A stretch of 64,000 nt of DNA from Laetmonice hystrix (GCA_965235115.1 OZ249436.1:27590001-27654000), one strand, 5' to 3'; shown: positions 6,624 to 54,695, counted from the stretch's first letter. A program made the numbers and translations. The notes: generated from the sequence alone by a model not told the origin.

Positions 6624-7047
6624 TAAAATTTCTGTTATAAAATGTTAGGTATGTTTGGGGAGCATTCTATACTAAAATTTCTGTTACAAAATGTTAGGTA
6701 TGTTTGGGAGAGCATTCTATACTAAAATTTCTGTTACAAAATGTTAGGTATGTTTGGGGAGCATTCTATACTAAAATTTCTGTTACAAAATGTTAGGTAT
6801 GTTTGGGGGAGCATTCTATACTAAAATTTCTGTTACAAAATGTTAGGTATGTTTGGGGAGCATTCTATACTAAAATTTCTGTTACAAAATGTTAGGTATG
6901 TTTGGGGAGCATTCTATACTAAAATTTCTGTTACAAAATGTTAGGTATGTTTGGGGAGCATTCTATACTAAAATTTCTGTTACAAAATGTTAGGTATGTT
7001 TGGGGAGCATTCTATACTAAAATTTCTGTTACAAAATGTTAGGTATG
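6624..7047. repeat. Minisatellite, 49-50 bp unit (taaaatttctgttacaaaatgttaggtatgtttggggagcattctatac), about 8.6 copies
   Basis: Copy starts at 6624, 6673, 6723, 6772, 6822, 6871, 6920, 6969, 7018; head-to-tail with no spacers. Confidence 0.97.
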
Positions 7048-8712: not shown

Positions 8713-8925
8713 NNNNNNNNNNNNNNNNNNNNNNNNNNNNNNNNNNNNNNNNNNNNNNNNNNNNNNNNNNNNNNNNNNNNNNNNNNNNNNNNNNNNNNNN
8801 NNNNNNNNNNNNNNNNNNNNNNNNNNNNNNNNNNNNNNNNNNNNNNNNNNNNNNNNNNNNNNNNNNNNNNNNNNNNNNNNNNNNNNNNNNNNNNNNNNNN
8901 NNNNNNNNNNNNNNNNNNNNNNNNN
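8713..8925. other. Assembly gap (213 N)
   Basis: Run of N in the sequence. Confidence 0.99.
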
Positions 8926-10473
8926 GGGGTCAGACAGGGATTGCTCTGTTTATTCAGCAAACTGTTCGTTTCATTGATGTTCTCTCGGCACATACAGGCA
9001 CACAAACATCCACACATTATTATTATACAGCCAACCCCCCAACCCCCCGACTTACACTCACCATTCCTCTCCCATGGGACATTCTTTATGTTGCGCATGG
9101 CGGGGAAGGAATGGCGCTTGTTTGATAAAACAGAAAGATATCAGGCACATATTAACGGATTGTGTTTACCAACTTTTCCAGCAAGCAAGGTCTTAAAAAC
9201 TGTTGTCGTGCATATGCATATTTATAAGGAGCACCCGTCGCTTCCCCCTCAGTCATATTTCACTGATGAATTTGTCTTTTTTTCTGGTTACAGAGTTGCT
9301 TAATAGACTTGGAAATATTTCAGGTCACCACTTGAATTGCGTCCAATCCACGCAGTCACGCTCATTACGGAGCAGTACGACGATTCCCAGCGTTTCACTG
9401 AGAGTCGTTATTGATGACGGGTGTAATTAATAGTAACTGCCACCGGAGCCTCTGGGCCTGGCGCCACGAGCATGTGTGCAAAACTGATTTACATTTCGAA
9501 ATGGACTCACAAACACTGATATAGACAGGCACTCCTCTGGCAAATGGTAATACGCTCCAGTCGTAACTACGTCCCAGCAAACAGCATATGGTCAAAGCGC
9601 GCTAATTTTCCAGGCTGGCTCCTAGGCATTCCGTTAACGGTGCTGCTGCCTGACGAATGCAGGTACCACCAGGATCCAGGGACAGCGACACCGGGAAAAA
9701 AATCAGAAGGAATCTGTAATGAACTGTGCGGAATCCAATTTACACTTTATTTCATCCACTATGATTAATAATTGCCCATGTCAACCATGCCGTTAAATAT
9801 ATTTCAAGTAGAGAGAGTAATTATCTCGAGGACCCATAGTTCATTCAATTTATGAGCTCTTGTGAATTGGTTTTGTTTCTCGGTAAGGCGGAGTGTTGCA
9901 GTAAAAAGAGGGGGGAGGCGTGTGGAGGGATGGGGAGGGAGGGAGGAGGATGTAGCATGCAGAGGCTGCTGCGCAGGCTGCGCGAGCAGCGTTATCGTGA
10001 AAGATATTTGTGGGATTTAGCTCAGCCCACTAAGCTGATTTGTCGGTGTGTGTTTGTGATGATGAACAATAACATTGTCTCTCACGCTTGAAGCCATAGA
10101 TTGCTCTTGTTGGCAGAATCTGGCGGGAGGGAGGAGGAAGCGGAGATGACATCCTGGAAGTTAGAACACCACACGCTCCCAACACATGCATTCATTATGG
10201 TAGCGGAACCATGCGTTTCTACCGTTACCGGCACCTCTCCCCCTCCCTCCCCGCCCCTCTCACCCAGTGGCCTCCTTCTCAACCAAGATATTAGTAATTA
10301 ATGATGCAATCCAAGCCATACATTTGCCCAACACTGCGCACGGCATGTCATTCTTGCCATGTCAATGGCCCTTTGGCGTGCTTGCGTGTGCTTGCCCTGC
10401 TGCGTGGGGGGTGCGCGTGTGTATGTGCGGTGGGTGCATTATGTTGTAGGTGCCTGAATTCACCTTCTCCCTT

Positions 10474-21500: not shown

Positions 21501-24500
21501 CTGGGAGAACTTGTCCGTCACTTTTCCTGCTACTTGATGCCACCACCCAAACAAGAAGTTCAGGCGCAGAACTGCTTTCCTCGGGAATAAAAATTGCCAT
21601 CTGCATCTTCAAGGAACAGATACTGAGATAGCTTCCTCAGGACATGCCCGTATCGTCAGCCAGTTATGAACTCCAAGGTGACATGTGAAATGGTTGGTCA
21701 TCTGGTCATACATATATAGGCCTACTTAGTAACTACGTAAGTAGTCGGTCTATTTCTACTTGCTTCTCTGCTGGAATGTGTGCTAGCATTTATACATGTG
21801 GGAGTAAATATTGTCATAAAACACTAGACGTAAGTGAATCCTTTAATGGGAGAGAACGGCATCTTTCATGGCGCCTTTTGGGTAATCTTTTCCTGCCATC
21901 GCTGACTATTATTATCTCTGTGTGACTATGATTGATGGCGTATGATACATGTGCCCGCCATGGTACGCATACGATATGTACATAGGAAGGCAAGTTAACC
22001 AAGTGACATAGGGCGGCAAACCACTAACCAACACACCACCCAACCACATGCTACAAACCGTTGGTTGGGTGAGTCAGGGCCGGGACAGAGGAGGCGGCCT
22101 CCAACCAACCTACGCACCGAGTTTAAAGTGTGCCAAGCACCGTGACAGCTCTCTTTGTGACAGCGAGGGGTCAACAGTGGTTTAGGCCTGGTTTAATGGA
22201 GGCTCGTTGGTTGTAGGCTATCGCTGACAACAACCGGCTTTCCCCTCACCAAGCCCAGCCATGGGCGGGCGTGGTAGCGATGGTGACGCAGGTGGAGTGC
22301 GCTGCATTTCCTCGGGGCAGGTCGATGAAAAGTTACAGTAGGGGCCAACAAGAGTTTTATGTTAGAGTGCATGTATTGTTTATCATTTGGCACATTTAGT
22401 ATAAAAAAAAACAGAAATAAAAACAATTCAGTGATGAGAGGGAAACAACGGGACGTACATGTACGTATATGTTAGCGTTGATGGGAAAGATGAAAAGTCT
22501 GGGTGTTTTTTTAACGCTGTAATGAGTATCATGTTGCATTAGGTCGTTCTATGATTGATCTGTCATTAATGCTTCGTTTTGGACTGGAATGACTGGAATG
22601 TTGACATTTCATCAGGAGATAAATGGCTCTGAAGAAAGCATAATATATGGTGTAAACACCTCACCAGCGCAGCTATAACAGAATCATATCCGGGCTCCCC
22701 ACAGTTAAGTCGTTTTTAGCAGAAATGCTTTACTTTGAGTAGGCTTCACACTGATTGTGTGGATGTGATATGACCACTAGCAAGCAGACACTAGGAGAAA
22801 GCCAGGTGCTAAGTGTACTTGTGATGTTCACAGGTACGCAGTGCTGTCTGTTCATGTCTAATGGCTGACTTGATGACTATGGGCAAGCCCTGTCGTGCTG
22901 ACACATAAGCGCGGGTCACCTTTGATTTGGCCCTTGCCCATTGAGCATTTGCTTAAGTGGCATAGTTCCATCGCCTGGCTTCCCAATCTGTCTCTGCAAA
23001 AAGGAAAAACGGGATCTCAAAGTGAAGGGTCGCTGGGGAGAAGAAAAGTCTCTCGCAGGAGACTCAAATACCTTTCTGCCGGCGGGAAACTCCCGCTTTA
23101 CACGTCACTTTGTCTGCTCTGGTTCTTTAGTTACACCAACGTTACACTTTCAAACATATGACACAAACCTGTCCTCGGTGGACTGATATCTAATTAGCTC
23201 ATAAATCTGGCACCATGTGGAAATGGCCACGGGAAGTTCCACGACCAATGGGGACATAATAGCCGATAGCGTGCATCCGCCTGGGCTTTTATCTCCTCTC
23301 GACATCCGCTGAGGGGCAGCTCACACCGGCTACGTCTCATCGGCAGCTGACTTGAGATAACAGCAACTCACTGCAGCGAAATGCTGTTTGCATTAAAATG
23401 TTATGTATCGAAGCCAAGGAAAGGTGTCTTCTCGGCCAAGTGTAGGGTGTAATGTGGAATCGGCCTCCCACTTCCGCCTGGCCAACCGCCCAAGCTGACC
23501 AACTTAATCAGATAATAGGCAATTTCACTCACATGTGAGACTGTTTCAAATATTGCCATTCACTGACTCATTTAATTGGTTCATTAATAATGTAATAACG
23601 GTGGAGGGGGATGTGAATTGTTGCACTGGTTGGAGAGTTTGCAGTATTGCACACACTACAGTTAGCAGACAAAGCCGGCAAACCTTCTGCCAGCCCGCAG
23701 TGCACGGCCCCCATTGGCTGAACGGCCTCCATCTGAACACCTCGAGCAGCCAATGGGAATGCAGGGCTAGGTTTGATGGATAGGTTAGGGCCACTCAGTG
23801 AGAACAAGGTACAGAGTACAAGTCAATCCCACCCAGAGCTCCTGGTGCACGGTTATGGGTAAGTCCCTGTTTTACTCCTCTGTCAATTTTCATCTTATTT
23901 TGGCGTTTTCCAGCTCGAAAACGATACGGTATGTCTGGGCGGGCTTGTTAAGGTACGAGGACAGGTTTGGGAGGGTATCTGATGGCGGTAAGTGGAGTTT
24001 TTGGCATTGTTAAGGTTTGAGAGTGGAACTGGCTTTGTGTGTGGCATGTGGCAAGCGGGCTGTTGGTGGTGGTGGCAGTGGTGGTGTTAGACAGCAGCAG
24101 GAGTAGAGTTGCTGAGAGGCAAGCTGTCCCCACCACCACCACCGCTGCCACCACCACCAGCGCCGCCGCCCTCCCCGTGGCTGCATCCTTTGGCTACCGC
24201 TGCAGCAGGCTCCGACCCTCGGCCCACGGTAGAGGAGGCGGCTCCGGCCTGTAGCAGCGGCGGAGGCGGTAGTCGATACGGATAGAGCTCACCGAGCTGA
24301 GCAACGGGAAGACAACCTCGGTGAACAACCAACCCAAGTATACCAAGCAAGGAGGAGGAGAAGGAGAAAGCGGACTCAATACACACTTTGTACACATTCA
24401 GCCACACAGATGTCGCGGGATTTACCATTCAGCCAACTGTTATCCATGGAGTTACACCATCAGGATTTCGCTGGGAACCTTTCGCTGTGTTCAACCCGTT

Positions 24501-28618: not shown

Positions 28619-28896
28619 TCTGTTATTGAGGAACTAGCACTGTACAATTCAGCTCAGTCTGTTATTGAGGAACTAGCACTACATAATTCAGCTCAGTCTG
28701 TTATTGAGGAACTAGCACTGTACAATTCAGCTCAGTCTGTTATTGAGGAACTAGCACTACATAATTCAGCTCAGTCTGTTATTGAGGAACTAGCACTACA
28801 TAATTCAGCTCAGTCTGTTATTGAGGAACCAGCACTGTACATAATTCAGCTCAGTCTGTTATTGAGGAACTAGCACTGTACATAATTCAGCTCAGT
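28619..28896. repeat. Minisatellite, 39/41 bp unit (tctgttattgaggaactagcact[gt]aca[ta]attcagctcag), 7 copies
   Basis: Copy starts at 28619, 28658, 28697, 28736, 28775, 28814, 28855. Confidence 0.97.
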
Positions 28897-30119: not shown

Positions 30120-30420
30120 GAGCCAACCCAGCGGTCGGGCTGCATGGCTACAAGGTACAATATTTGTCTGGAGGCGAAGACCAATCAGCGGCCAGTATTT
30201 GGTAAAGCTCCAATCTGATTGGCTGATGGCCTCTGCAGCTGTTGATAGCGGGACGGGCTGGCGGTGGAGCGGAGTGCAATGTGCTTCGCCAGTTGGCCAC
30301 ATGGTGGCAGCACATACTGATGCGGCCGCGTCCCCCGAGGAAATCTTGATTTACTGATGGAGCCACAGTGTGCTTCATTGTGCGGCTGTCAGCCCCTCGC
30401 GCAATAAATCTAAATTAGAA
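30120..30420. promoter_or_regulatory. CpG-rich promoter/enhancer candidate with three CCAAT boxes
   Basis: GACCAATCAG at 30179, CCAAT at 30210, reverse AGCCAATCAG around 30218, in a CpG-dense block about 5 kb upstream of the AUG exon. Confidence 0.4.
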
Positions 30421-32610: not shown

Positions 32611-35486
32611 GGGGCAGAGCGAGGCGTCATTGGGAGTTTCTGTATTATGGTTTCGGCTGGTATAAAGGAGGCACCGATTGGGAATTCCAAGCACTGACCT
32701 TGTTGGTAGCTCGCGCATCTATACTAGAGGCTGTTCAGGAATGCGGCCAGTACACGAAGCCACACCAGACTTTGCCATCAAACACACGGCCAGATTAGAC
32801 TGTAATTGGTGCAGAGTCCCAAGGTAATGATAACCAGGCAAAGTGGGGTTAGCAAAGGGTGGGTCGGTGGGAGGGGTTGAGAGACGAAGACCGAGTCTAG
32901 CGGGTGTAAATTTAGTGGCGCTGTCGGGAGTACGTGACAGGCGGACACAGATGTTGAAGCTGACAGCGCTGGTCCTGATTGATATGGGAAGTGAAGCCAC
33001 ACAGACTCCGGGGCCGCGGCTCGAGCTCGGCCAGGCTGGTGCAGAGGCGCAGGGCTGGAAAGCGAACCCTTCCTTTAGGCCCCACACATTACTCTGGGCA
33101 GCATGGTGTACATACACATGTGGGAATTGGTACCAGATCAGATGTCAAGTGTAGGACCAGAGGTTGCCAGCTTTCAAGCTCAGACCTGTCAGCTAAGGGA
33201 TTTCTACAATGGTTTAAACAGAAAAACCTGACAGGTTGGAGCCTTATGTCAGTTTGGTGAAAAATAAGATACCTTTGAGTTTAAGTAAATGCTTACATTA
33301 TGAGACTATTAGTAACAGGAACTGTTTCTGAAATGCAAAACTCTGGCTTAAAACTGAAGAAAGACAGTCAACAAAAAATGATTTAAAAACTCCAAACAGA
33401 ACAGATGTGTATCCTTAAAACGCTGAAATTTACGAGAGTCATATTGTTTTTGCTATCTTCCAGTGTCAGAGTATTGTTTTTGAGCAACATGCCAAGTCAA
33501 ATATGTACTTTTCTTTGTGGAGCCAAAGACCCGCACTGAAACTCCAGTCTAGTTTTCCCACCTACACACTTTCATTATGCAGAGAGCTCCACCATTCTGT
33601 CAGATTTTGTCTGGGAATCTGAGTGAAGGACTCTAACTTTGATTATGAGAGAAGGCAATGTGTGGTGGACCCGCTGCACTGACTGAAGGGGATTAGTTCT
33701 CATGTGATCAGGATTGGTATTCAACATGGCCCCGAGCAGCTATTGATTGGCTGTGCTTGATTTATCTGGACTGACGGCTCGGTTTGGTGCAGGAATGGCG
33801 GGGTGTGTCAGTCTGGGCATGCGGCAGAGCTCAACCAGGTCCATGGCTTCATACCACAGTCTCTGGGCTCACAAAAACCCACCAGTGCAGTTACCAGTGG
33901 AAGCAGGGGGTATTGGGCATGAAGGCTGGAGGCTGAAGCCACATGTCTGCTAGTCGCTTTCAGTCTGTGCCTCATGTAGGCTTGTACTTATCGCATGCGT
34001 AACGGTTTCTACAACAGGGCATTATGAAATGAGATTTTTAAATCTCTTGGTAGGCTTGTTAAAGCAGAACTCGTATTTCGGATTTGTAGAAATGTACGAC
34101 TGGCCATTATGGCGGATGGGAACCAGAGTTGAGACCTGTAAATACAGAGATGTTAATTTCATGTAAAATGACCAAGCAGGAAAGCTGACGTTTTTATTAC
34201 AACATCAGATAGGCTAGCCGATTCTCCATGAGATTCCTGTTAGCATTCCTTTCTAAATGTCAGAGCAGAAGCACGACAGGGCTGAGATCCGATGTCAAAT
34301 GTCAAGCTCTGTTACTCACCAGAAACAGTGGCATGTTCCAACAGGCAGACAGGAATCGGATACACTGATCGTACTTTGCCTGCTGTTTCTAGTATGCTCC
34401 GTTTAGCACTGATAGCAGTGGTTCTATACATTAGTCCACCAGTGATTTCATGCTGAAAAACTGCATCCAATGTAGAATCCACGTTCACTCTATTAAAATA
34501 GAATACATTCCTGCTTCACATTTGATGTTTATGTGGACATTTATTTCAGGATGATATGATTAATGCTGTGATATTGGATTCAAGGTCCGTAACTGAGTAG
34601 GAGGAAGTGTAATGTGCGATAGGATTTCATATACTGTGGTTGAATTGTGGACTGAAGAAAACTAAATATGCTCAGTATGAAAATGATCCCATAGATTTTC
34701 ATCCTTTAATGTTTGCATACCAAAGTGGCTGAAAGGATGCCTGCAGTGCCTCATTCAAGGGCAGGACATAAAGGGGATGGTATTTGAAATTGAGTGTACC
34801 ACCCAGATGATTCATCTGTGTTCTCTGACAACTGAGGGCAGTGACACAGGAATGTGACCTCTGAGACTGGCGAACAAACAGCTGCAGTGTTGAAGCACAT
34901 TGTAAAGCAGTTTGTACATGTGCATCATGATTATTACACCAAGCTCACAGCACTTGCCGACTACTATTATAGCCCTTTATTCTGTCAACATACCCACAGG
35001 AACTTCTGTCATTATCTGTAGTAGGTTTGGCTTTGTGGACTGTACAAGGGAAGCCTGGTAGTCTCGTTAGGTTCAGTTCTTGAAATGAGGAAACAAAGAT
35101 TGCAAGGACTTTGATAAATAACAGAACTTGCACGTGATAACAGTACAAACAATGCAGCTGTTTTATAGGGTTATAGAGTATTTATTGTTGTTTGCCAGCC
35201 AACATTTCGGATTCGTCTACATAAGGAACTTTAATTGGAAGTATGGTAGGCCGGCTTGTAAAAACAGGCCGCGTTCTGATTAGTAAGTCATCAATGTAGT
35301 CAAATCATCAGTGTAAAAATCATGGTAAAGAATACATACATGGGAGTGGAATTTGTCCCAAGAGTCCAGAATGTTTCAAAAGTTTATTTTGTTGTTGTTG
35401 GCATTAGACTTACAGCATTCTTTTTTTCTTTTTTCCAGAGCTTGCTGCACAAAAGTAGCAGGCACTGCGGAGGATTGTAGTCGCCA

Positions 35487-36317
35487 ATGAAAGAGAGTTC
35501 CCCGCCCGGCCACCAATGTGTGGCCGCACAGTCCGACCGCAGTACTCGCGGCTCCACGCGACAGTCAACTGCAGCCACGACAGTCGTCAACAATTCGGAT
35601 CGTCTCAATAACAACCACACCGTTTCCGATCATGACGATACCGACTCGGACGGTGACTGGGATGTTGGAGTAGGCAACCTGGTCATCGACCTTGATGCCG
35701 ACCTCGAGCGCCACCAGAGGGCGTCGGTGTCAGGATCCCTGCCCCCTAGTATTACCAGTGGCAAAATGAGCTCCGTTGAGCATCACGCTGTTGTTGATAA
35801 CGGACTCAAAATGAAAATCAAACGCAAGAATGTTGGATCTAAGACTTCAGATGCTAAGCACGAAATTGTGAAAAACCCAGACGGGAAGGTCTCAAGTGGT
35901 AGTAATTCGACTGTGGATAATACTAGTACAAATATGCCTGGATCTGTTCCCAACTCACCTATGGATAAACAAAAACATGGAGCTACCTCTGATAAGGAGA
36001 AGGCTACCAAAGGACGAGGGGCCCACAAGAAGGATAAAGGCCGCGCCAAGGGGATGGAGCCAATATCTAATGGCAGCCCTTTTTTATCATCTCCCGGGAG
36101 TATAAGTAGCAGTTCAGGCCCCTCTGGGTCAAGTACAAATAGTACATCTATACCTAACTCAGCCCTTGTGCATAGGGTCTCTGTTGAACTAGATCGGATA
36201 TCTACGGTACCCTTTATCAAGAAGGAAACTCCAGCTGAGGACCCCTATGAGTTCAATGCCAAAGTAGAAGATGGAGGCCGGCCCTTAAGTTTCACCAAAA
36301 AAGTCAAAGTCGAGAAG
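35487..36317 (+). CDS. ZNF608: ZNF608/609 coding exon 1 (277 codons); whole exon is 35439-36317 including 48 nt of 5' UTR
   Basis: Acceptor ttttttcttttttccag|AG at 35438/35439; in-frame TAG at 35478 upstream of ATG 35487; GNLVIDLDADLE and MKIKRK motifs; donor GAGAAG|gtgagt at 36317/36318, phase 0. Confidence 0.93.
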
Positions 36318-38397
36318 GTGAGTCATTATCTTAAAGGCTTTTCCCCTTTCTAAAGAAATGGTTGAATATTAGCTCTCTAGATTTTCAGTTTCGCCAGGGA
36401 AATAAATACGATCTCTTATGGTCTTCAACTGTAGGATTAGCCCATTTATATGATGTTACAAAGCTCTTTTTTTAAAAAAAGAGGACAGGAAATAGAATGA
36501 AAGGCTATTGTGTGCAGTTACCATGGTCTGTCTAAACTGTATGGTTTGAGAAGAATCCAGGAATGACTGCATAGATAACATGCCTTCTGGTAGTCTTAAT
36601 ACACTGATACAACTAGGCTGGCAGGGCAAGAGGGCAGTGTGCTAGTCGCCTGGAATATTGGAAGGAACTGTGATGTGATTAGGTAGTGGAGATTGTACTA
36701 GATGAGTGGATCGGAGACTGATGATGGCTGCGTGTTATCAGGACAACCAACCAGGTTTCCGAGGCTAGAAAGGATCAGGATGCCTTTCATCCATCAGTCT
36801 TGAATGGGCCAAAGATGCCAATGGTGGGGGGTTGGGGGGAGGGCAGGTCCTGGGCAGGGCATTCCGTACTGAAGAGGCAGGTCTGAAAGGTTAGGGAGGG
36901 GTGGCGAAGGATTGCTCTAGTTTTATACAGCAGTCACATTTTACCTGCTCGCTCATACATCACTGGCCGCCTCATGAATAAACCATAACACAGTACAGGA
37001 CCAGAGCACCGCTCTGCTCCCAACAGTTAACCCAGGGAAAGTCAAGGCTCTCGATTCCTGACACCATGATGCATTGCCACTCGCAGCAGAAGTCTTGCCC
37101 GTCAAACCAGGCTTGGCAGAAAACGAAAGCCAACGAAATCGGTCAATCAGAACGTCTGGAAACATAAATTCAAATAAGATGTGTGGGGATTGGTGTGGAA
37201 GTCCTGGACAGGCCTGAACGCGTCACTCTGTAGGTTCAGTACCTTTTCTCTCAGCTCCTGGAAGTTGATTTATATTTACACGATATATCTCAGAAAACAG
37301 ACTGTTCATGTGGACGGGAACCAGCTGTGTTGATGTCAAGTCATCTGTTCTTCATTGCTTTTCTCTCTTCTCTCCACTGATGTGATGATTACTTAGTACA
37401 TAATGTTTCAACACACAAACGAATCACAGATACTTGCGTTCTTAATCAAGTTAAGAAGAGGTTTTCGAAGGATGGTACCTGTAATTGTGAACTTGAAAAA
37501 TTCGTAAGCTGTGAAAATGATGGGTACAGTAAAAAAGAGCGCTGTGTTGAGGGCCCGCACGTGGGCGGCTGTGAAAGGCTTGTGTATTTGTACCACCTCC
37601 GAGTGCACAAAGCCAATACCTCAGGGAGAAAGGCACAGTCACTACCCACATACCTGGCGGAACCATCGGAAGGAAATGGAAATTGGAGGAGCTGGTAATT
37701 TAACGACAGGCTTCGTCTCGACTCTGGAGGGAATGGTAGAGTGGGAGTCAAACGGAAACAAAGGCAGGTGATACTGTACGGGTTGGGGTTATATTAGGTT
37801 GAATAATGTCGAATTTCTAGAAAAACACCCAATCACAATTAATGTTCATCACTTTTAGCTTGGCGACTGCAGCCATGGGTGTTGTCAGCCTACATAAAAG
37901 AACCCCTCCCCCCTTATATAAAAGAGGGGACTATTTTTCATGAGCATAAGAGCCTCGGCATTGGTGTTGACTTTACCAACCAGATGGGTGAGCGGCTATT
38001 GATAGTAAATAGAGCGTGATGCCTCATGCTCAATATCATAATGGCCTGTGACGGAATAGGATAAAATGTAAACATTATTTATCCAATTGTCGACCCAGGA
38101 TGTATATATCATGGTCCAGCTGTTCAATCACAAACAACGTTTTGTTAAAAGAATGACCTTTGCCGTGAATGTCTCAGCCAGTGTGCCATTAGTAGTTACT
38201 AACTTGCTATACTATAGAAAATCTGTTCTTTATTAACAGAAGACGAGACTGGGGGGGGGGGGGGCATTCATGATGAGACAAATCTGTTGTAGCAGAATAA
38301 TTTTATACGTCAGCCTGACAGTTCGAATAGTTCGGGAAAGACGAAAGGTGACTCACGTCCACACCTTTGACCACAGGTATTAAAGATTAGTCAGAAT

Positions 38398-38678
38398 GAG
38401 ATACCATCCACCGGTATTCAATAGATACCAGCCACATGAACTACCAGACTAGAGATACCGATCCACCGGTATTCAATAGATACCAGCCACATGAACTACC
38501 AGACTAGAGATACCATCCACCGGTATTCAATAGATACCAGCCACATGAACTACCAGACTAGAGATACCGATCCACCGGTATTCAATAGATACCAGCCACA
38601 TGAACTACCAGACTAGAGATACCATCCACCGGTATTCAATAGATACCAGCCACATGAACTACCAGACTAGAGATACCG
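38398..38678. repeat. Intronic minisatellite with alternating 54/55 bp units, 5 copies plus a partial
   Basis: Copy starts at 38398, 38452, 38507, 38561, 38616, 38670; units alternate GATACCATCC and GATACCGATCC. Confidence 0.97.
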
Positions 38679-41454
38679 CTAGTACAGTGTTTTTTACTGT
38701 AAAATATACGGACGGGCCTTGCTAGTGTCTGAGGGGTACAGTGTATATATGTACGTACATTAATTATATAAAGAAGGGGGGAAGATTGGGGTAGAAAAAG
38801 TGTAAGAAGAGAGGCAGACTTGAAGGAAGCCCATTTATCAAGGCATAGAGTTGCCCCCACTAGAACCACCTGATCTCCCTTTGAACCGGTGCCAACTTGT
38901 TGGTTGGCAGGGTGAGGTGAGAATTCACGATGACACGGAAAGATAATGTAGAATGCTTGTCTGACAGTGTCGTTAATTATAAGGATTACGCCAAGGGGAT
39001 AGGGTCACTGAGGCACGTCAACTAGTGAAGCTTTTTTTAAAATTTAACTGGCACTTGAGGTTCACGTTTACTAAAAAGTCGATTCACTTTTTATTTTACG
39101 TGGAGGTTCTAAAGCGTTAACGATTTGACTGACTCAGACAGAGACACATTATTACAGCGGTTAGCAAATTGAGACAACATCTACATAACTAGTGCAGCTA
39201 AAGTGTCACATTTAGACAAATAGGATGAAGTGGTTAAATTGACTGTTTTGTGGGTGTCGGATGAAAATGGATGAACACACTGCAGCAAATTTCCTCATAC
39301 CTTTAGCTACATTCAGCTTTTGGGGAAATACAAGCAAGAATGGTTGTCATTGTATTTTGTTTTAAGTTTTCATCAATGAATAACATCCCATGACATCGAC
39401 ATATTTGTGAAATAAATATGCCCTGAAAGTTTCTATAATACGAGGTTTGGCCGTTTGGGCTAGTCGTGCTGGATAGATTTTAGTATCTTAGTATTTTAGT
39501 ATAGAGTTTAGTATCAGACTGGCAGTACAGTTTCAACTGATTCAGCAGAAAACGGACAGTGTGAGCGGATGATGATGCTCTTCACATTGTGATGAAGGTA
39601 GTTTGCCCCTGCCCAGCTTGCACTCGCTAAAACCGACTGGTTGAGGTTGGCCTACTATGGGCTGTTTTTGCTGCCGTTTGTGCACTGGAGGCATGAGAAA
39701 AATCGGTGTGTTTAGCTGGGTCATGTAAACCGCTATTGGCTGATGCTAAACATCTGAAGCAGAGTTTGTGGAAGCGATTGTGCACTTAAAGCATGCCCCA
39801 AGTGATTCAGACAAAAGCACTTTGGCCTTGGCTCTCCATGCTAAGTGTAAGGGAACAACAGTATTACCTGGTAGCACTGAGCCAGGTATATATGTGTAAA
39901 CAGTACAGAGAACTAAATTCCAGTACTGTGTAAAGAAGGGCGGGCGTTATACCCAAAGGACTAACTTACATTGAAGTGCTCTATTTTTATGACCATTTAT
40001 AAACGCAGTTTCCAGTGCTTTAATTGGAAACTTTGTTTGTTCCGTTGCGTAATTATAGTGTAGTTATAATTATAAAGCGATCATGTAAATGAGTCACTGC
40101 TGAGGTGTTCGCAGATAATGGTGTACCCATTGAAAGCCTCTCTGTGGGGAATACATCTTATAAATGTCTATAACTTCCATTGAACGACACCATGTGGGCG
40201 CAAATAAAATTAAACTCTTGCCAACACAATCTTGAATTAAGTATTTTTCAAAATGATGTTTGTTCCGACAGCAGTGGGTGTACCCGGTTTACACATGGGA
40301 AATCTGGAGTCTGACTGTGGTTATTATAGGCTTGTCAGCCATCCCCCTGGCCCAACCCAGACCACCCAAACTGCGGCCTAAGTACGTTTGGCTAGTGTCA
40401 TTATACAAGCACTAAATCTGTAGTAGAAACGGAACACTGGCTGTGGCATGCTGACTTGTACCAAGGGGGGTTCACAGGGGGCTGCATTTAGTGGACTGGG
40501 CAGAGTTGACGTGCTGAGGGATGTTCCTACAGATTATATAGCCTGACTGAGCAGGTCACTAACGCCTTTACAACCCAGTAATGTGAAGCTCTTTTTATAG
40601 CAACACTTTGTATGAAGAGGGAAAGAACTAGGTCGTAAATCCATGGCTCTAACGCAAGCAAGAAATAGGTTTTTTTCCCCTGTTATTTTTACAAATAGGT
40701 TATTTTATTTCTACCTGTGCCTCTTTACAGGTCTATGACTTTAGTCGGCAACATAAAACTAAACAGATTTTAAGTGACACCTCCTACCATGTTGAAGTTA
40801 TCAGTCGGCAGTGGGAGCATAAATAAATGACCAAGTTAAATAGAGATGTTATTGCAGCGATAAGGAGAGCAACTGACACTGGCCTCTGAAAAAGTGCTTT
40901 ATTTATGTAGAGTGGGGCAGGGACAGAGAGGGGCTGGCTGGCAGTGGGCTGTTCAATGTCTCTGACAGACAGAACCCCCCCCCCCCATAGCTGTGAGCTT
41001 GATCACTACCGCCCAGCCTGGCTCCGACACCGGCCGCTAGGAAGCTGTCCTTTCACAAAGAAGTCATTAACTACACACATGAAATAGGATACAGCGAACA
41101 TGGAGTCGGTGTTGACATAGGCGAGCGATGGTTCAGCGGCGGAGACCGTGGCTGACTCCCGGCCTGTTGACACATGTGTTGAAGGCATGTGAAGGCCTAG
41201 GGCCGCGCTGCCCGCTTCGCTGTTGTACATGTCAAACAGAACAGAGCACTTTCTCAGCCCATCCCCCCTGCCCCTACCCCCCTTTGTTTGTGTCTGAATT
41301 TGGGCATTGTGACTGCTGTGACAGCAGTTAGGTGATTTATTGCTGACAAACAGTTGGCCCGGCGAATCTGGAATCAGACATGAGGGTAGGCAGGGACTGC
41401 TGGGCATGTTCATCGGTAGCTGTTTCCAAGGTAACCATCAGAGACATCATGCGT

Positions 41455-41623
41455 TCACGTGATGAGATTTTCTGATTGTTTTAATGAGGCAAGAACTCGG
41501 GAGTTTGGCAGCACAAGTCAGGGAAATCTGGGCGTCGGAAATCGGCGGCCAGCTTAAAGGATTTCCATACAGAACTAGGCGATCATATTACCGCTTTGGC
41601 GCCAAATATTTGGACAAACCAAT
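41455..41623. promoter_or_regulatory. Candidate internal promoter in the intron before coding exon 2
   Basis: TCACGTGA at 41455, CGGAA at 41536, palindrome TTTGGCGCCAAA at 41595, CCAAT at 41619; CpG-rich. Confidence 0.4.
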
Positions 41624-42133
41624 GGAGATGCGAGCTTAAATTCCAAAGTTGCGACAATGCAGAAACGCAGAGATCCGGTTCTCTGACATATGTAGAGTAT
41701 TTTATCTTCCTTAAGATGAGTTTTACTACTTGAATAATTTTTCAAGATTTATGGATTATACATGTGATTTGTTCTTTTCTGATTCGTCCTCTGAAACATG
41801 CAATTCCTCATGTTAGTGCCACAACCTCCGCAGTCTCTATAGTGAGTCTCAATTCCACTTGGACTCAAATATCCGTTCGATAATTCTTGACACTCGTACG
41901 TAAAGGCGTGCTTTTAAAGATGGCTACGTTTTCCCTGAACCGGTCTGTCGTCTTATGTCATGAGAGACAGCAGCAGCAAACAAAGACATTTTGTATTTTA
42001 CAAACTTCACTCAGATTGGGGCAGGTGGAACCATTTCCTTTTAAGGTGGAAAATACAAGAAGGAGAAATATGTATGTGTGTTTTTTTCTATATCAGGACT
42101 TGAAGTTAACAATGTCTGTGGTTGTGTTTACAG

Positions 42134-42305
42134 GCCGAGACGTCGACGTCTGCGCCAGCCGTGCCAACAAGCGTGCCCCAGATGCACAGTGTCGGTGTAG
42201 AAACGTGTAGTGTTGGCACGGCCACCGACCCGGATTGCCTGGGGCCGTGCGAACCTGGGACGAGCGTTACTCTGGAAGGCATCGTCTGGCAAGAGACTGA
42301 AAATG
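42134..42305 (+). CDS. ZNF608: ZNF608/609 coding exon 2 (AETSTS...[40 protein letters not shown])
   Basis: Acceptor gtgtttacag|GCC (phase 0); donor AATG|gtgagc (phase 1); 172 nt; first half of the conserved family domain. Confidence 0.93.
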
Positions 42306-48444: not shown

Positions 48445-48532
48445 GTGTACTGGTAGTGAATGTGACGTGGCGAGGAAAAACATATGTTGGCACGCTCCTT
48501 GACGCCACAAAACATGACTGGGCCCCACCAAG
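48445..48532 (+). CDS. ZNF608: ZNF608/609 coding exon 3 ([30 protein letters not shown]); absent from the ORF track
   Basis: Acceptor tttatcctgtag|GT; donor CCAAG|gtgagc; 88 nt, phase 1 to 2; second half of the conserved domain. Confidence 0.95.
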
Positions 48533-48762
48533 GTGAGCAATGGTCTACGGAATCAAATACTTTTTGTACAGAACACACTTAGACCTAAATAGATAACAAA
48601 AGAAACGCTCAAAAAAGAATCTTCATAATGTACGTCATGTATTGACAATGAAAATAAGAGAAATACAAATTTTCCTATACAGTTACTTGAATGTTTGTCT
48701 TTCTTTGTTCTTGCTGCTTTGTAATATTCGTTGATATTCATGGAGGTTCTTTCTCTCGATAG

Positions 48763-51700
48763 GCTGAACTGTGATTCGCCGACCAGCGACGTTGACGTGC
48801 GGACACCAAAAGGACGTGGAAAACGCGGTCGGGCTGCAGCGAACAACAACGCCGAAAACTTGGACGGCGTTCGAAAACTTCGGAAAGGACGCCGGAACAA
48901 TTCGGGGACATTTACGGCTCCCCCAAGTCCGGCCAAGTCGGACAACAATGGCCCGGCTTCGGTGAAACGAAAGGGAAAGGTTGCTGACTTGGAATTAAGT
49001 ACAGATGGACCTAAGGCAAGCAAGCGTTGCCGGAGTAATTCTCGAGGCACTCCGACAGGAAGTGTTACAACCGAATCTCCTACATTGATTGAATGTCCAG
49101 AGCCCAACTGTAACAAGAAATACAAGCACATCAACGGATTGCGATATCACCAGACTCATGCGCATCAAAACAATATGTGTGGTACCGAGGATAATACCGA
49201 TGATACCAACAAGGATGTACCTAGTTCAGAGGACAGTGGACCTCAGAGTCCAGGGGTTGCCTCAACCAAAAGTGATAAATCTACACGGAGTAAGACCAAA
49301 AAGGCGGCCAGTGCTGCTGCAGCCAATAATAACAAATGCACAGACGATGGGGACGAGCCCCTTGCGAGGGCGAGTCCCCGAAAAAAAGAGGATAGTGCAG
49401 GTTCGGGAAACTCGAATAAAGTGAAAACTACACAAGGAGCGGATACGCGATCAGGGAAAGCTGACAAGAAGGACAGTGAGGTTAAGAAAGCGGACAAGCC
49501 TGCCAATGTGCCAACATCTTCAGCTGCCAGTACCAATGTGGACAGTAAATCTAATTCGTCCCAAATGTTTCAGATCTCAGGGGCTTCGATTGGCTGTTTA
49601 GCTACGACGGGGGTCATGGCACCGCCAGCCTCAGCCAATCAAATCTTTGTTAGCGCTGGTGTCGCAACAACAGCTACTACCCAAATTATTGCGGGAACAA
49701 CAGTTACAACAGTGCCAGTTGCGTTACCGACGGGTGCGACAATTGTGTCGGTTCAACAACCGATTGACGCAAAAGTTGACAGTGATAAGGGAAAAAAGGC
49801 CAAAGGTGATAAAGGGGATAAGAGTAAGGCCAAGTCTTCAGTGGCCACTAGGCCCATCATGCCCGCTCCAACAATGAATGTGGCCCATACACAATTAACT
49901 TCTGTGTCAACCCATGGACAAATATCCCCGACTAGCCCATTAACTGCTGGGTTGAAGCCTATCCAGCCTAAGCCTACAATCATGGGTGAACCTAGTCCTA
50001 ACCCAGCACTTGCGACATTAGCTAAGGAAAAGAAACCCAAGAAAAAGAAGACAAAAGACAAAGAGCAGCCTCCTGTTCCAACTAGTCATCAACAACAACA
50101 ACAACAACAACAGCAGCAGCAACAACAACAACAACATCAACAGCCGCAACAACAACAAATACAGCAGGCCAAGGGTCCTGTACACAAAGACCTAGGGTTC
50201 ATTAAACAAGAGGACGGTGGTTTGACTCCACTCAAACCTGAGTCTCGGTCTGTGATTAAGACAGTTCCCTCCCCGCTGAAACCGGCAGCGGAGGGCAGCG
50301 ACCCCCGGTTACGGGACCCAGCCAGTCTGCCCCCAGAACTCTCCAAACAGCAACCCGTGGGCAGCCAAGGGCCCCAGGCGGCCAGAGGGGACGGCAAGGG
50401 CGACTCGCCGTCAAAGTCCAGCAATGACCAGCGGCTAGCCCGGCCTCCATCCAGCCTTAGTATCAACTCACCCCTCCAGGTGAGCACGGAGAACAGGGAG
50501 CACTCGGGCGACGTCCAGAGTCCAGCCTACTCGGATATCTCGGACGAGAGCGCCCCGACCTTAGAGAACGAGACACAACCCAAACCCAAGGAGGACGGCG
50601 AGAAAAGTGGACCGCCCGACGGCAAGAATGGTGACCGGCCGCCGGAACATTCCATGGCTGCTTACGGCATGTACCATGGATATTACGGACAGCCGCCTTA
50701 TCTGATTCCTGCCGTCCCCACCAGCAGCCCCTCCCCGGCGGCGGCTGCGGCCTCGCCGGGGGCTGGGGGCGTGGGGCCTAGGCAAACCCCACCTAGCAAA
50801 CCTAGTGAGAAAGAACTGGACTTATCGAGCAAACCAGACCCCACATTACGAAAGGAGGGTGAACGGGACTCAAACAATGTAGATAAATCTAAAGATGGCA
50901 GCACGAGTAACAATAAACCAAACAGTGACGATGTGAATAAGGGTGCAAGTAGTAATAGTCAACAATTAACTGACTACCAATTGCAACAGCAAAAGCTGAT
51001 GCAACAACAACAAATGTACCAATATTACGGTGGTTACATGGACCCTAATTATGTGCGTATTATGAATGAGTATGGCAGCCAACAAGAAAAACTGCCTGAG
51101 GACCAGGATCGCAGGGGTAAAGAGGCCAACCCCGTAGAACAGTCTAAAAACAGTCCTGGTCCTAGTAAACGAACAGACTCTGAAATGACACCCAAATCAA
51201 AGAGTGAGGCGAGGCCTTCTAGTAGAAGCACCCCCAACACGCCCCACAATTCTCAGTCTCAGTCCCATTCCCAGCCATCTACTCCACAATATTCACAAAG
51301 TGCTAAGCAGTCCTCTCAGGCAGAAAGGGCCGGAGACAAAGCTACTCCCCCGACAAAACCCCCAGCATTGATCTCAGAAAAGGAGCGAAAGCTTCGCGAA
51401 ATGGAGCAGCGCGCCTCGGTGAGTGACGCCAGTTTAAAGGAGAAACAAAACGAAAACCACCAGATCCTAAAGGAGAACATAGCGCTCAAGAACCAAATGG
51501 ATATCCGGCACAACAAGCAGAGTCGCATGGAATACAACCAGCAACAGTATGACAACAACATGCTGATAGACCGACAGAGGGACGAGCTCCAGCGCTACTA
51601 CCTCTACCAAGAGCAGCAGCAGCGTATGCTCGAGCAGCACCGTATCGAGGAGGAGCGGCGCAGGTACTTTGAGCACTATGGTAAGGATGCACACCCTCCT

Positions 51701-52532
51701 CCTCCTCATCCTTCTCCTCATTCTCACTCTGCAGCACAGCGCCGACAGCCTGAAACCATGGCTGGCTCACAGCACGGGAGGGAGCATAGGGACAGTCCAA
51801 ATAAAGCCCATTCAAAGGAAGCCAAGCCCGAAGACGGGCAGAGGGAAGGCGCTCGTAGCCGCGACTCGAGTGAGAGCCGGCCACCCAAAGAAACCGGTGG
51901 TGGTGAGGGCAAATCTAACAGTGATAGTAGTAGTGCTAAACACAAAGACAGCGCTGACGACAAATTGGGTCCTAACCCAAACCCACGGACGACAACTCCG
52001 AAGTCAAGCAAGGATGGTGTGCCGATGTCAATCCCAGGCTCGTATGCACAGTATATTCCACATGCTTACTTGCAGACCCCTCACTATGCCCAAATGCCAT
52101 TCGACTCTAGCCACCCCATGTATCGTGGAGTGAGCCCCATCATTGGCTATGCTGGCCCTCCATACCTTCACCAGGCCCCCATGCGCTATCACATGTCGCC
52201 AGGCTTGGAAGAGTCCGGTGACAAGGCGAAATTACTTTCACCAGGGGGCGCTTCCGAGCGCAAGGGTGCACCACCCGAACATACTGGTAAAGCTCTCGAG
52301 TTGCTCCAGCAACACGCGTCGCACTATTACAGCTCTAGTGGCCAGCATAAGATCCATGAGCTACAGGAGCTGGGGAAGGGTGAAAGTAGGGCTTCGCCCG
52401 CCAAAACAATCCCTGAGAGTGGGGAGAAGGTCCGCGAGTTGAGTAAGTCACCACCACCCCAGCGCCACCTTCACACTCACCACCATACTCACGTAGTGGG
52501 CCCTGGATACTCTCTCTACGATCCTTACGGTG
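48763..52532 (+). CDS. ZNF608: ZNF608/609 coding exon 4 (3770 nt: C2H2 finger, polyQ, low-complexity regions, ALELLQQH and HTHHHTH motifs)
   Basis: Lies in the 1269-aa track ORF; acceptor ttctttctctcgatag|G (phase 2 completes AG+G Arg); donor TACGGTG|gtgagt at 52532/52533 (phase 1). Confidence 0.95.
49094..49165 (+). other. Single C2H2 zinc finger [24 protein letters not shown]
   Basis: C-x4-C-x12-H-x4-H pattern read directly; one finger is typical of ZNF608/609/brakeless. Confidence 0.95.
50090..50167 (+). repeat. Coding polyglutamine tract Q15-H-QQ-P-QQQQ-I-QQ
   Basis: (CAA)7(CAG)3(CAA)5 followed by an interrupted CAA/CAG run, in frame. Confidence 0.97.
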
Positions 52533-53987
52533 GTGAGTAGCCATCCTGATTCCAAGTGATTAGCACAGTGGTTTTTTTTTCCTTCCAAGATGCTCTGCAT
52601 ACACCGCTTGGCTCTCTAATAATTCAATTTATTGCAAAGAAAGAGAAGTAGATCTGGTTCGTTTAAGAGTCTAGAAGATGACTGTCACTTTTAAAGTGGC
52701 CATTGGCCGACTTTGATTTGGTTATGTTTCTGGAATTAGTCACATAATAAAACTGAAAGGGAGGCCCGAACCATGAAGAAGTTGGACAGGGGAAACTTGA
52801 AAAAAACACGAGAGAGCTTTGCCAGATGTATGTGCTGAGCATACAAAAACTAACACCGCCGAAATGTTATTGAAAAGTTAATGAAAATCTCATTTTCTTT
52901 ATGGCGTACAGAGTACCGGTAGGCTGAAAGGTTAGGGAGTAATTAATAAAGTGAAATAGATGAGTGGAGTAGAAACTTAAAGCGACTTAATTTACACTCA
53001 ATTTTTCTTTTATGCAACATCCAATCTTCTGGATAGACAGTGAGTGAATTTTTGGGGACCGTGCAGTGAGATTGATAAGTCTTTCTTCTGTAAGAGGAAA
53101 AACAAATCATGATTCTTAAAGTTGGCATCAAACAAAAAGCAGTAGTTTTTATCGTTCGAATTTAGAAATTTTACTTAAATAGGAATCTAGTGCAATATTT
53201 TCCTATCAGACAGTTTAATACCCTGTCACCACGACTAGGGATTGTCCGATTCTTGTTGAGAAATAACTGTGAGCTTGGCCTAGCGGGAATAGAGTTTTCC
53301 AGCTGAAGTCCTCCAAAATAGAATATCCCTGTGTGTCCTACCCTCTAGCCCCCAACCCTCGCACATTTCCAAACATTGACCGTTCCGTACCTTTAGGTGG
53401 GGGGTATGCCACCTGTACACACTCCTCAGGGGGAGAACAAACACCATCTCCCACTTGGCATGCAAAGAAGTGCTTAGGTGCCTGCCTTACTGACTGACTG
53501 ACTGAATACCAAGGTATCTGTTTTAGATTTTGATCCGGCTTCAGGTTAACCTGGCTCAGCAGATTGAGGCGAGGTTGTGACGGAGGTGTCGGAACCTGTG
53601 TGAAGTCAGTCAGTACTGACATGTGACATTGGGAGGTGACAGTGATAGGTGACATTGGGAGGTGCCAGTGACAGGGAAGAGATCGCGCTGTAATTGATGC
53701 CATGCCGTGTGTGCCATGTTGTTGGTCCGCCCCGCGTGGGGTGCCGCCGCCGCCCTCCCGGTCCCACTGCTCCGACTGATGTAGGAGGTCGGCAGGCAGG
53801 CTGGCTGGCTGGCAGGAGATTGTGAGCGATTACCAGAATTGATCAATTGGTCAGGTCTGCAATTTATTCAAAGTGGTTCCTCAGTGAAACTTGATCGAAT
53901 GGCCCGGGCAGCGGGCCATGTAAAATTGAAGGGGCTGAGAGTTTGGAGAGAGCGGATCTGCTTGAGGCACCGTGGGAGCAGGTCGAG

Positions 53988-54695
53988 CCTGGCGCTGATA
54001 GGGTGGCACGCCAAAGTCAGGGTGGAGTACCGCCTGGACCTGGCGCTGATAGGGTGGCACGCCAAAGTCAGGGTGGAGTACCGCCTGGACCTGGCGCTGA
54101 TAGGGTGGCATGCCAAAGTCAGGGTGGAGTACCCACCGTCTGGACCTGGCGCTGATAGGGTGGCACGCCAAAGTCAGGGTGGAGTACCGTCTGGACCTGG
54201 CGCTGATAGGGTGGCACGCCAAAGTCAGGGTGGAGTACCGTGTGGACCCGGCGCTGATAGGGTGGCACGCCAAAGTCAGGGTGGAGTACCGTCTGGATTT
54301 GGCGCTGATAGGGTGGCACGCCAAAGTCAGGGTGGAGTACCGTGTGGACCTGGCGCTGATAGGGTGGCACGCCAAAGTCAGGGTGGAGTACCGTGTGGAC
54401 CTGGCGCTGATAGGGTGGCACGCCAAAGTCAGGGTGGAGTACCGTGTGGACCTGGCGCTGATAGGGTGGCACGCCAAAGTCAGGGTGGAGTATAGTGTGA
54501 ACGTGGCGCTGATAGGGTGGCACGCCAAAGTCAGGGTGGAGTACCGTGTGAACGTGGCGCTGATAGGGTGGCACGCCACAGTCAGGGTGGAGTACCATCT
54601 GGACCTGGCGCTGATAGGGTGGCACGCCAAAGTCAGGGTGGAGTACTGTGTGGACCTGGCGCTGATAGGGTGGCACGCCAAAGTCAGGGTGGAGT
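53988..54695. repeat. Intronic minisatellite, 51 bp unit (cctggcgctgatagggtggcacgccaaagtcagggtggagtaccgtgtgga), about 14 copies
   Basis: GGCGCTGAT recurs at 53991, 54042, 54093, 54148 (4-nt insertion), 54199 and then every 51 bp to 54658; explains the repetitive ORFs in the track. Confidence 0.98.

Follow-up and report, generated by a model that had tools for sequence, protein, structure and literature searches.

Can the start-codon exon of an invertebrate zinc finger gene be back-spliced into a circular RNA (circRNA), and would such a circle be translated? The question is raised by a 64,000-nt stretch of DNA from Laetmonice hystrix (GCA_965235115.1 OZ249436.1:27590001-27654000; hereafter the window), in which positions 35439-36317 form an 879-nt exon holding the start codon (AUG) of a predicted orthologue of the vertebrate genes ZNF608 and ZNF609. 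The original prediction saw in this exon a translatable circle, one stop codon short of an endless rolling-circle open reading frame (ORF), and took human circ-ZNF609 as its precedent. Here we argue that this is probably an ordinary, deeply conserved start-codon exon of the ZNF608/609 orthologue, and that any circle made from it would most likely be low-level or non-coding. What is new is the combination of an apparently ancient exon architecture with a circular reading frame that drifts freely, which agrees with the critical literature on the translation of AUG circRNAs.

The start-codon exon and its splice sites

The exon, its signals and the notional circle are arranged as follows.

35418..35438, + strand: polypyrimidine tract and AG acceptor, 19 of 20 pyrimidines, ttctttttttcttttttccAG/AGCTTG
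35439..36317, + strand: AUG exon and candidate circle, 879 nt = 293 codons, from sequence and translation
35439..35486, + strand: piece of 5′ untranslated region (UTR), 48 nt; on the circle, 13 extra codons and a stop
35478..35480, + strand: TAG, the notional circle's sole in-frame stop, separated from the ATG by 6 nt
35487..35489, + strand: start codon in the conserved context CGCCAATGAAAGA, common to the window and the related loci L001 and L002

This is probably exon 2 of the gene and its first coding exon. Its coordinates and 879-nt length, the GTGAGT donor (GAGAAG/GTGAGT, after 36317), the frame-keeping join, the single stop and the 5.8-kb intron that follows were all found in the window sequence as they had been described. 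The exon begins at 35439 with AGCTTGCTGC, and its coding sequence (CDS) comprises 831 nt, or 277 codons. A notional join of 36317 to 35439 would read these 277 host codons, then SLLHKSSRHCGGL, then the TAG at 35478-80, giving an ORF of 290 codons; the circle holds exactly one stop in frame 0, with 9 and 27 in the other two frames. The predicted back-splice junction is ...GTCAAAGTCGAGAAG/AGCTTGCTGCAC..., and the predicted junction peptide is VKVEKSLLHKSSR (VKVEK/SLLHK...).

The acceptor at 35438/35439, on which the prediction depended, is backed by conservation, as AG/NGCTTGCTGC appears at the same place in two relatives, L001 and L002/L003. Cross-species similarity upstream of the exon starts only ~15-20 nt before this acceptor. 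At the other end, five tblastn alignments with orthologues stop at 36317 or, for Haliotis P0013, at 36320, and that of a sixth orthologue, Saccoglossus P0109, stops earlier, at 36044. A second AG 2 bases downstream of the acceptor (exon start 35441, GAG context) was considered as a weaker alternative and is absent in the relatives.

Identity of the host gene

The four coding exons were placed by tblastn with homologues, and their limits were then adjusted to splice sites and reading frame. Downstream of the AUG exon these gave the following structure.

36318..42133, + strand: downstream flanking intron, 5,816 nt, GTGAGT...AG, phase 0
42134..42305, + strand: next coding exon and start of the ZNF609_beta region, 172 nt, from tblastn, splice sites and frame
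48445..48532, + strand: coding exon, 88 nt, from tblastn, splice sites and frame
48763..52540, + strand: large last coding exon with a C2H2 finger and a polyglutamine tract, stop TAG at 52538-40

The ORF at 48731-52540 (1,269 codons) has hundreds of protein matches that bear the name zinc finger protein 608-like or 609, in nemerteans, molluscs, brachiopods, annelids, chelicerates, insects, amphioxus and vertebrates. Precomputed annotations of many of these proteins include PF27627 ZNF609_beta; a Pfam search of the exon peptide and the large exon returned no family. Towards the N-terminus, the motif DWDVGVGNLVIDLDADLE can be aligned to nemertean, brachiopod, amphioxus and shark proteins, and the start of the exon peptide, MKESSPPGH, resembles the MKE/MRE starts in Lingula, Tubulanus, Lineus and Limulus. 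Among the aligned proteins the WD-GVGNL-IDLDADLE motif is near-invariant and GLKMKIKRK is common to most. The (D)PYEFNAKVED motif and a terminal KKxKxEK are mainly lophotrochozoan, with KKxKxEK also present in Limulus, a spider and a shark. The protein matches and this motif-by-motif N-terminal alignment uphold the assignment of the exon as the AUG exon of a ZNF609-type gene.

The gene is single-copy in the genome (627 Mb, 35 contigs), and on sequence grounds we take it to be the sole ZNF608/609 orthologue (scribbler/brakeless in Drosophila) of a lophotrochozoan-like genome. Since there is one copy, its AUG exon would be co-orthologous to the start-codon exons of Drosophila scribbler/brakeless and of the two vertebrate paralogues. 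Single-copy status is as expected before the vertebrate ZNF608/ZNF609 duplication, and scribbler/brakeless/master of thickveins and vertebrate ZNF608 and ZNF609 likewise have the N-terminal motif, a ZNF609_beta region and one C2H2 finger. Outside the motifs, identity to scribbler, ZNF608 and ZNF609 is low (~30-45%). The demonstrated role of the exon is to open the coding sequence in the linear mRNA, to which it supplies 48 nt of 5′UTR and the first 277 codons, which include the conserved WD-GVGNL-IDLDAD and GLKMKIKRK motifs; it is joined by phase-0 splicing to the 172-nt exon 5.8 kb downstream.

Conservation of the exon layout

We compared the exon with the homologous loci L001 (64% identical), L002/L003 (59%), L004, L005, L007 from amphioxus and L008 from Limulus; P0121, the closest relative (88% identity), and P0127 lie outside this DNA comparison. 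L002 and L003 are two near-identical contigs of one assembly and most likely represent haplotigs that were left unmerged, not a duplication. A recurrent layout was seen, in which a short 5′UTR piece is followed by ~250-340 codons and a phase-0 donor after KKxKxEK, in lophotrochozoan relatives, horseshoe crab and amphioxus. In both amphioxus and Limulus an AUG exon of 0.8-1.1 kb with a phase-0 donor precedes one or two small exons and a very large exon. The KxKxEK/GT donor also recurs in the closest short protein matches, and shark ZNF608 carries the KKxKxEK motif.

The human exon, which was compared with the window exon via published numbers and motif alignment only, fits the same layout. Human circ-ZNF609 consists of a 753-nt ORF and 121 nt between its UGA and AUG, 874 nt in all (Legnini et al. 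2017, PMC5387670), and these numbers imply a 747-nt, phase-0 CDS part plus one extra residue. The lengths of the AUG exon in the eight species are listed below.

Window: 879 nt, mod 3 = 0, acceptor firm
L001: 905 nt, mod 3 = 2, acceptor firm
L002/L003: 978 nt, mod 3 = 0, acceptor firm
L004: 876 nt, mod 3 = 0, acceptor from sequence
L005: 793 nt, mod 3 = 1, acceptor from sequence
Amphioxus L007: 809 nt, mod 3 = 2, acceptor from sequence
Limulus L008: 1117 nt, mod 3 = 1, acceptor from sequence
Human: 874 nt, mod 3 = 1, from the literature

The exon layout that gives rise to the mammalian circle appears, from these comparisons, to be ancient. The mammalian exon that appears orthologous to the window exon does circularise (Legnini et al. 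2017, PMC5387670), and the parallels between the two are several: an orthologous host gene, a start-codon exon of 874 or 879 nt, an ORF that runs from the host AUG and is closed by a stop lying upstream of that AUG in the linear RNA, and a phase-0 donor, seen directly in the window and derived from the published numbers for human. They differ in that 121 nt separate stop and AUG in human and 6 nt in the window, one extra residue is added against 13, and the length mod 3 is 1 against 0. Moreover, circularisation has been shown for circ-ZNF609 in mammals, whereas for the window exon it is a prediction, and even for the human circle translation is contested (PMC7544230).

At its tentative acceptor the amphioxus exon begins GAG TGA (L007 2915-2920), so that back-splicing at this point would append a single residue before UGA is reached. 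This matches the one extra residue and UGA of human circ-ZNF609, and may be a coincidence.

The reading frame of the notional circle

A length divisible by three and a single in-frame stop had been taken to indicate a coding or rolling-circle RNA. Neither supports that reading or marks selection for a circular ORF, and both follow from a phase-0 donor combined with a short UTR piece. Given a phase-0 donor, the exon is divisible by three whenever its UTR piece is, a 1-in-3 event. When the 48-nt UTR piece was shuffled, no in-frame stop arose in 45% of cases and one stop in 38%, that is, at most one in 83%. Taken together, a frame "one stop short of endless" is therefore expected for about a quarter of such exons. 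In line with this, the exon is a multiple of three in 3 of the 8 species, the chance rate of 1/3.

The UTR piece that would encode the circle-specific residues is conserved as nucleotides. It measures 50 nt in L001 and 51 nt in L002, and 30 of 51 aligned columns are invariant. Read in the junction frame, 8/16, 6/16 and 4/16 sites vary at codon positions 1, 2 and 3, compared with 31, 22 and 71% in the real CDS of this exon. The post-junction codons of the three closest species, when aligned, show no wobble pattern, unlike the CDS. The post-junction peptides of these species are similar (SLLHKSSRHCGGL, GLLRRSGKHKEGECIRQ and RLLRRSSEPRGGGA), because the UTR is conserved at the nucleotide level. 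We found no coding constraint on the circle-specific part of the ORF, given the 8, 6 and 4 variable sites of 16 and the loss of frame in L001.

The comparison of exon length mod 3 and stop position across orthologues, proposed in the original prediction as a check, turned out against it: the remainders are 0, 2, 0, 0, 1, 2, 1 and 1. L002/L003 retain the homologous TAG, which L001 has lost, and the junction frame is not kept in L001, L005, amphioxus, Limulus or human. The frame properties of the circle drift freely between close relatives, which argues against a conserved coding role.

These observations bear directly on whether a circle could be translated from the AUG at 35487 into a 290-residue protein, comprising the 277 host N-terminal residues and SLLHKSSRHCGGL. 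Such an ORF does close as described, and Legnini et al. (PMC5387670) reported that the human counterpart is polysome-associated and translated. However, the tail shows no conservation at the protein level, and L001 does not keep its frame. With only 6 nt between stop and start, an internal entry site would have no UTR to lie in, and in a human construct the removal of the whole 121-nt UTR, by which the stop was fused to the first AUG, abolished the use of that AUG. The precedent is also weaker than had been stated. Ho-Xuan et al. (PMC7544230) could not detect endogenous circ-ZNF609 proteins and still obtained products from constructs incapable of forming a circle, which they traced to trans-spliced plasmid by-products. 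Likewise, Stagsted et al. 2019 (PMC6487579) found neither evidence for the translation of AUG circRNAs nor conservation of circle-specific ORFs. We consider translation of the circle very unlikely.

For an endless ORF, the UAG would have to be read through. The length is a multiple of three (879 = 3 x 293) and only one in-frame stop intervenes, as is also the case in L002/L003, and in L004 if its tentative acceptor is right. Nevertheless, that stop, the TAG at 35478-80, is present, and its UAG is kept in L002, the relative whose exon also keeps the frame; in L001, L005, amphioxus, Limulus and human a rolling circle would run out of frame. UAG-UCG-CCA is not known as a read-through context, which counts against this idea further, and we regard it as improbable in the extreme. 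A coding or rolling-circle role of either kind has at best a slim chance.

Possible circularisation of the exon

Whether a circle is made at all is a separate matter. By analogy with circ-ZNF609 the exon is a plausible circRNA candidate, and an ancient layout that matches the mammalian exon makes some back-splicing plausible. One account would have the exon back-spliced into an appreciable 879-nt AUG circRNA, an invertebrate circ-ZNF609 that is untranslated and acts as RNA or through competition with linear splicing. We hold this to be possible and somewhat doubtful, for the reasons set out below.

Four sequencing runs of one sample of the organism, none recorded as RNA, were compared with positions 33000-38999. 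Runs X1-X3 are genomic, as their contigs continue through the introns. Run X4 is RNA-like, with a depth of 4-10 inside the exon and zero over 5.1 kb of flanks, which weakly indicates that the exon is expressed. Its contigs cover only 35962-36248, short of both exon ends, with no joints and no relevant loose ends, and no back-splice read or contig was present in X1-X4, a null result that carries no weight either way. By word share, a coarse measure, the value for X4 is 0.29 in the AUG exon and 0.23 in the last exon; the similar shares show no enrichment and give no sign of an abundant circle.

Relative to the window, the contigs of all three genomic runs, X1-X3, have CGA inserted after 35721; these 3 nt are in frame and lengthen the exon to 882 nt. 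The absence of haplotype differences was considered as a mark of constraint and set aside: no single-base difference is listed within the exon, but positions 33000-33904 are equally free, with ~27 listed in the 1.5 kb upstream of the exon.

Further searches were likewise negative. None of 50 short homologues contained a circularly permuted ORF, and the order of motifs was collinear in all of them; those with the KxKxEK motif are genomic, since all read past the donor into unspliced sequence. A degenerate junction pattern run against metagenome contigs gave 38 matches, none related to the gene, an uninformative null. The literature searches turned up no circRNA for scribbler/sbb or for an invertebrate ZNF608/609.

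Sequence features that go with circularisation point both ways. AUG circRNAs are the most conserved class of circRNA and, in human, mouse and fly, are tied to long introns and not to repeats (PMC6487579). The window exon has the same general features, as its start codon lies inside a single long exon bounded by AG...GTGAGT, with acceptor and donor conserved in relatives, introns of several kb, the upstream one predicted, and an unconserved circle-specific ORF part; the class is defined by the back-splice junction, and the window exon is a candidate member. Reverse-complement pairing between the flanking introns, sought by repeat search and blastn, did not exceed the same-strand control. This counts against circularisation, but AUG circRNAs are tied to long introns, and a lack of inverted repeats fits the class. 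The length of the upstream intron depends on the first exon, for which there are two candidates.

30160..30234, + strand: conserved non-coding block, candidate first-exon site, 75 nt, 80% identity to L001 and L002
23498..23858, + strand: second conserved block with CCAAT boxes, candidate alternative first exon, ending in the conserved donor ATGG/GTAAGT

The first block holds two CCAAT boxes in opposite orientation (CCAAT/ATTGG; GACCAATCAG ... CTGATTGGCTG) and resembles a core promoter of the NF-Y type; it lies ~5.2 kb upstream of the AUG exon. As the site of the first exon it would imply an upstream intron of ~5.2 kb; the second block would imply one of ~11.6 kb. With a predicted 5.2-11.6 kb upstream and 5.8 kb downstream, the window introns are around or below the empirical human cut-off for a long intron, >6.5 kb (PMC6487579), and those of relatives are shorter: 2.2/1.5 kb in L001 and 3.9/2.1 kb in L002, with ~1.1 kb downstream in L005.

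Joining the second block to the AUG exon would have a further consequence for the UTR piece. With 23853-23858 joined to 35439-35459, the ATG at the end of the block would open a tiny upstream ORF across the junction, MELAAQK*, and the equivalent join in L001 (4278-4283 to 9963-9980) would open MGLAA*. This predicted ORF crosses GCTTGCTGC, where the UTR piece is most conserved, and a junction-spanning upstream ORF might be the reason for the conservation of the piece. The downstream intron also contains a minisatellite with a 54-nt period at 38398-38678.

An appreciable circle is favoured by the apparently homologous exon of similar size in human, by a long single AUG exon with perfect-looking acceptor and donor, by a downstream intron of 5.8 kb and a predicted upstream intron of 5.2 kb or more, and by the conservation of AUG circRNAs, which are long-intron rather than repeat dependent and occur also in Drosophila. 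Against it stand the silence of the reads and of the literature, the lack of enrichment over the last exon in X4, and the flanking introns of 1.1-3.9 kb in relatives, which weaken the case for a conserved long-intron mechanism. We consider trace back-splicing, as suggested by the mammalian analogy, to be more likely than an appreciable circle. If a circle is made, it would most likely be a low-level or non-coding AUG circRNA.

Our preference for an ordinary start-codon exon has to be weighed against three points. Its length, its AUG and its flanking introns, of a predicted 5 kb or more, are all features of human, mouse and fly AUG circRNAs; the apparently orthologous mammalian exon does circularise, so that an appreciable, conserved circRNA is possible; and in the length survey 5 of the 8 acceptors were placed from sequence alone.

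A circle shared across bilaterians?

A broader proposal is that the exon is appreciably back-spliced in the window species and its relatives, making circ-ZNF609 a bilaterian-wide circle like circMbl, with repeated termination at the UAG, 6 nt before the AUG, and re-initiation around the circle in the lineages whose exon is a multiple of three. Argued from analogy, this seems to us unlikely. If the back-splicing were true, circ-ZNF609 would join the very few circRNAs common to protostomes and vertebrates, and would point to a function or a constraint on biogenesis older than the ZNF608/609 duplication. The nearest parallel is circMbl / circMBNL1, an AUG-exon circRNA common to flies and humans that Ashwal-Fluss et al. 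are said to have described in 2014; it reportedly has experimental support in both lineages and a feedback acting via MBL sites in the flanking introns. The window exon would be a parallel case, in which the start-codon exon of a conserved regulator gives a circle common to bilaterians; nothing comparable to the support for circMbl or to its feedback was found here, where no test was aimed at it.

Other features of the window

A run of 213 N (gap or masked) occupies 8713-8925. Within the large exon, a CAA/CAG (polyglutamine) run lies at 50090-50158, and the region 50001-52000 has a very high AT skew (0.38), the coding strand being A-rich. Lastly, the window contains four minisatellites, at 6624-7047, 28619-28896, 38398-38678 and 53988-54695, with periods of 49, 39, 54 and 51 nt respectively; all have 5-14 copies with 93-98% matches, and one lies just past the stop codon of the gene.

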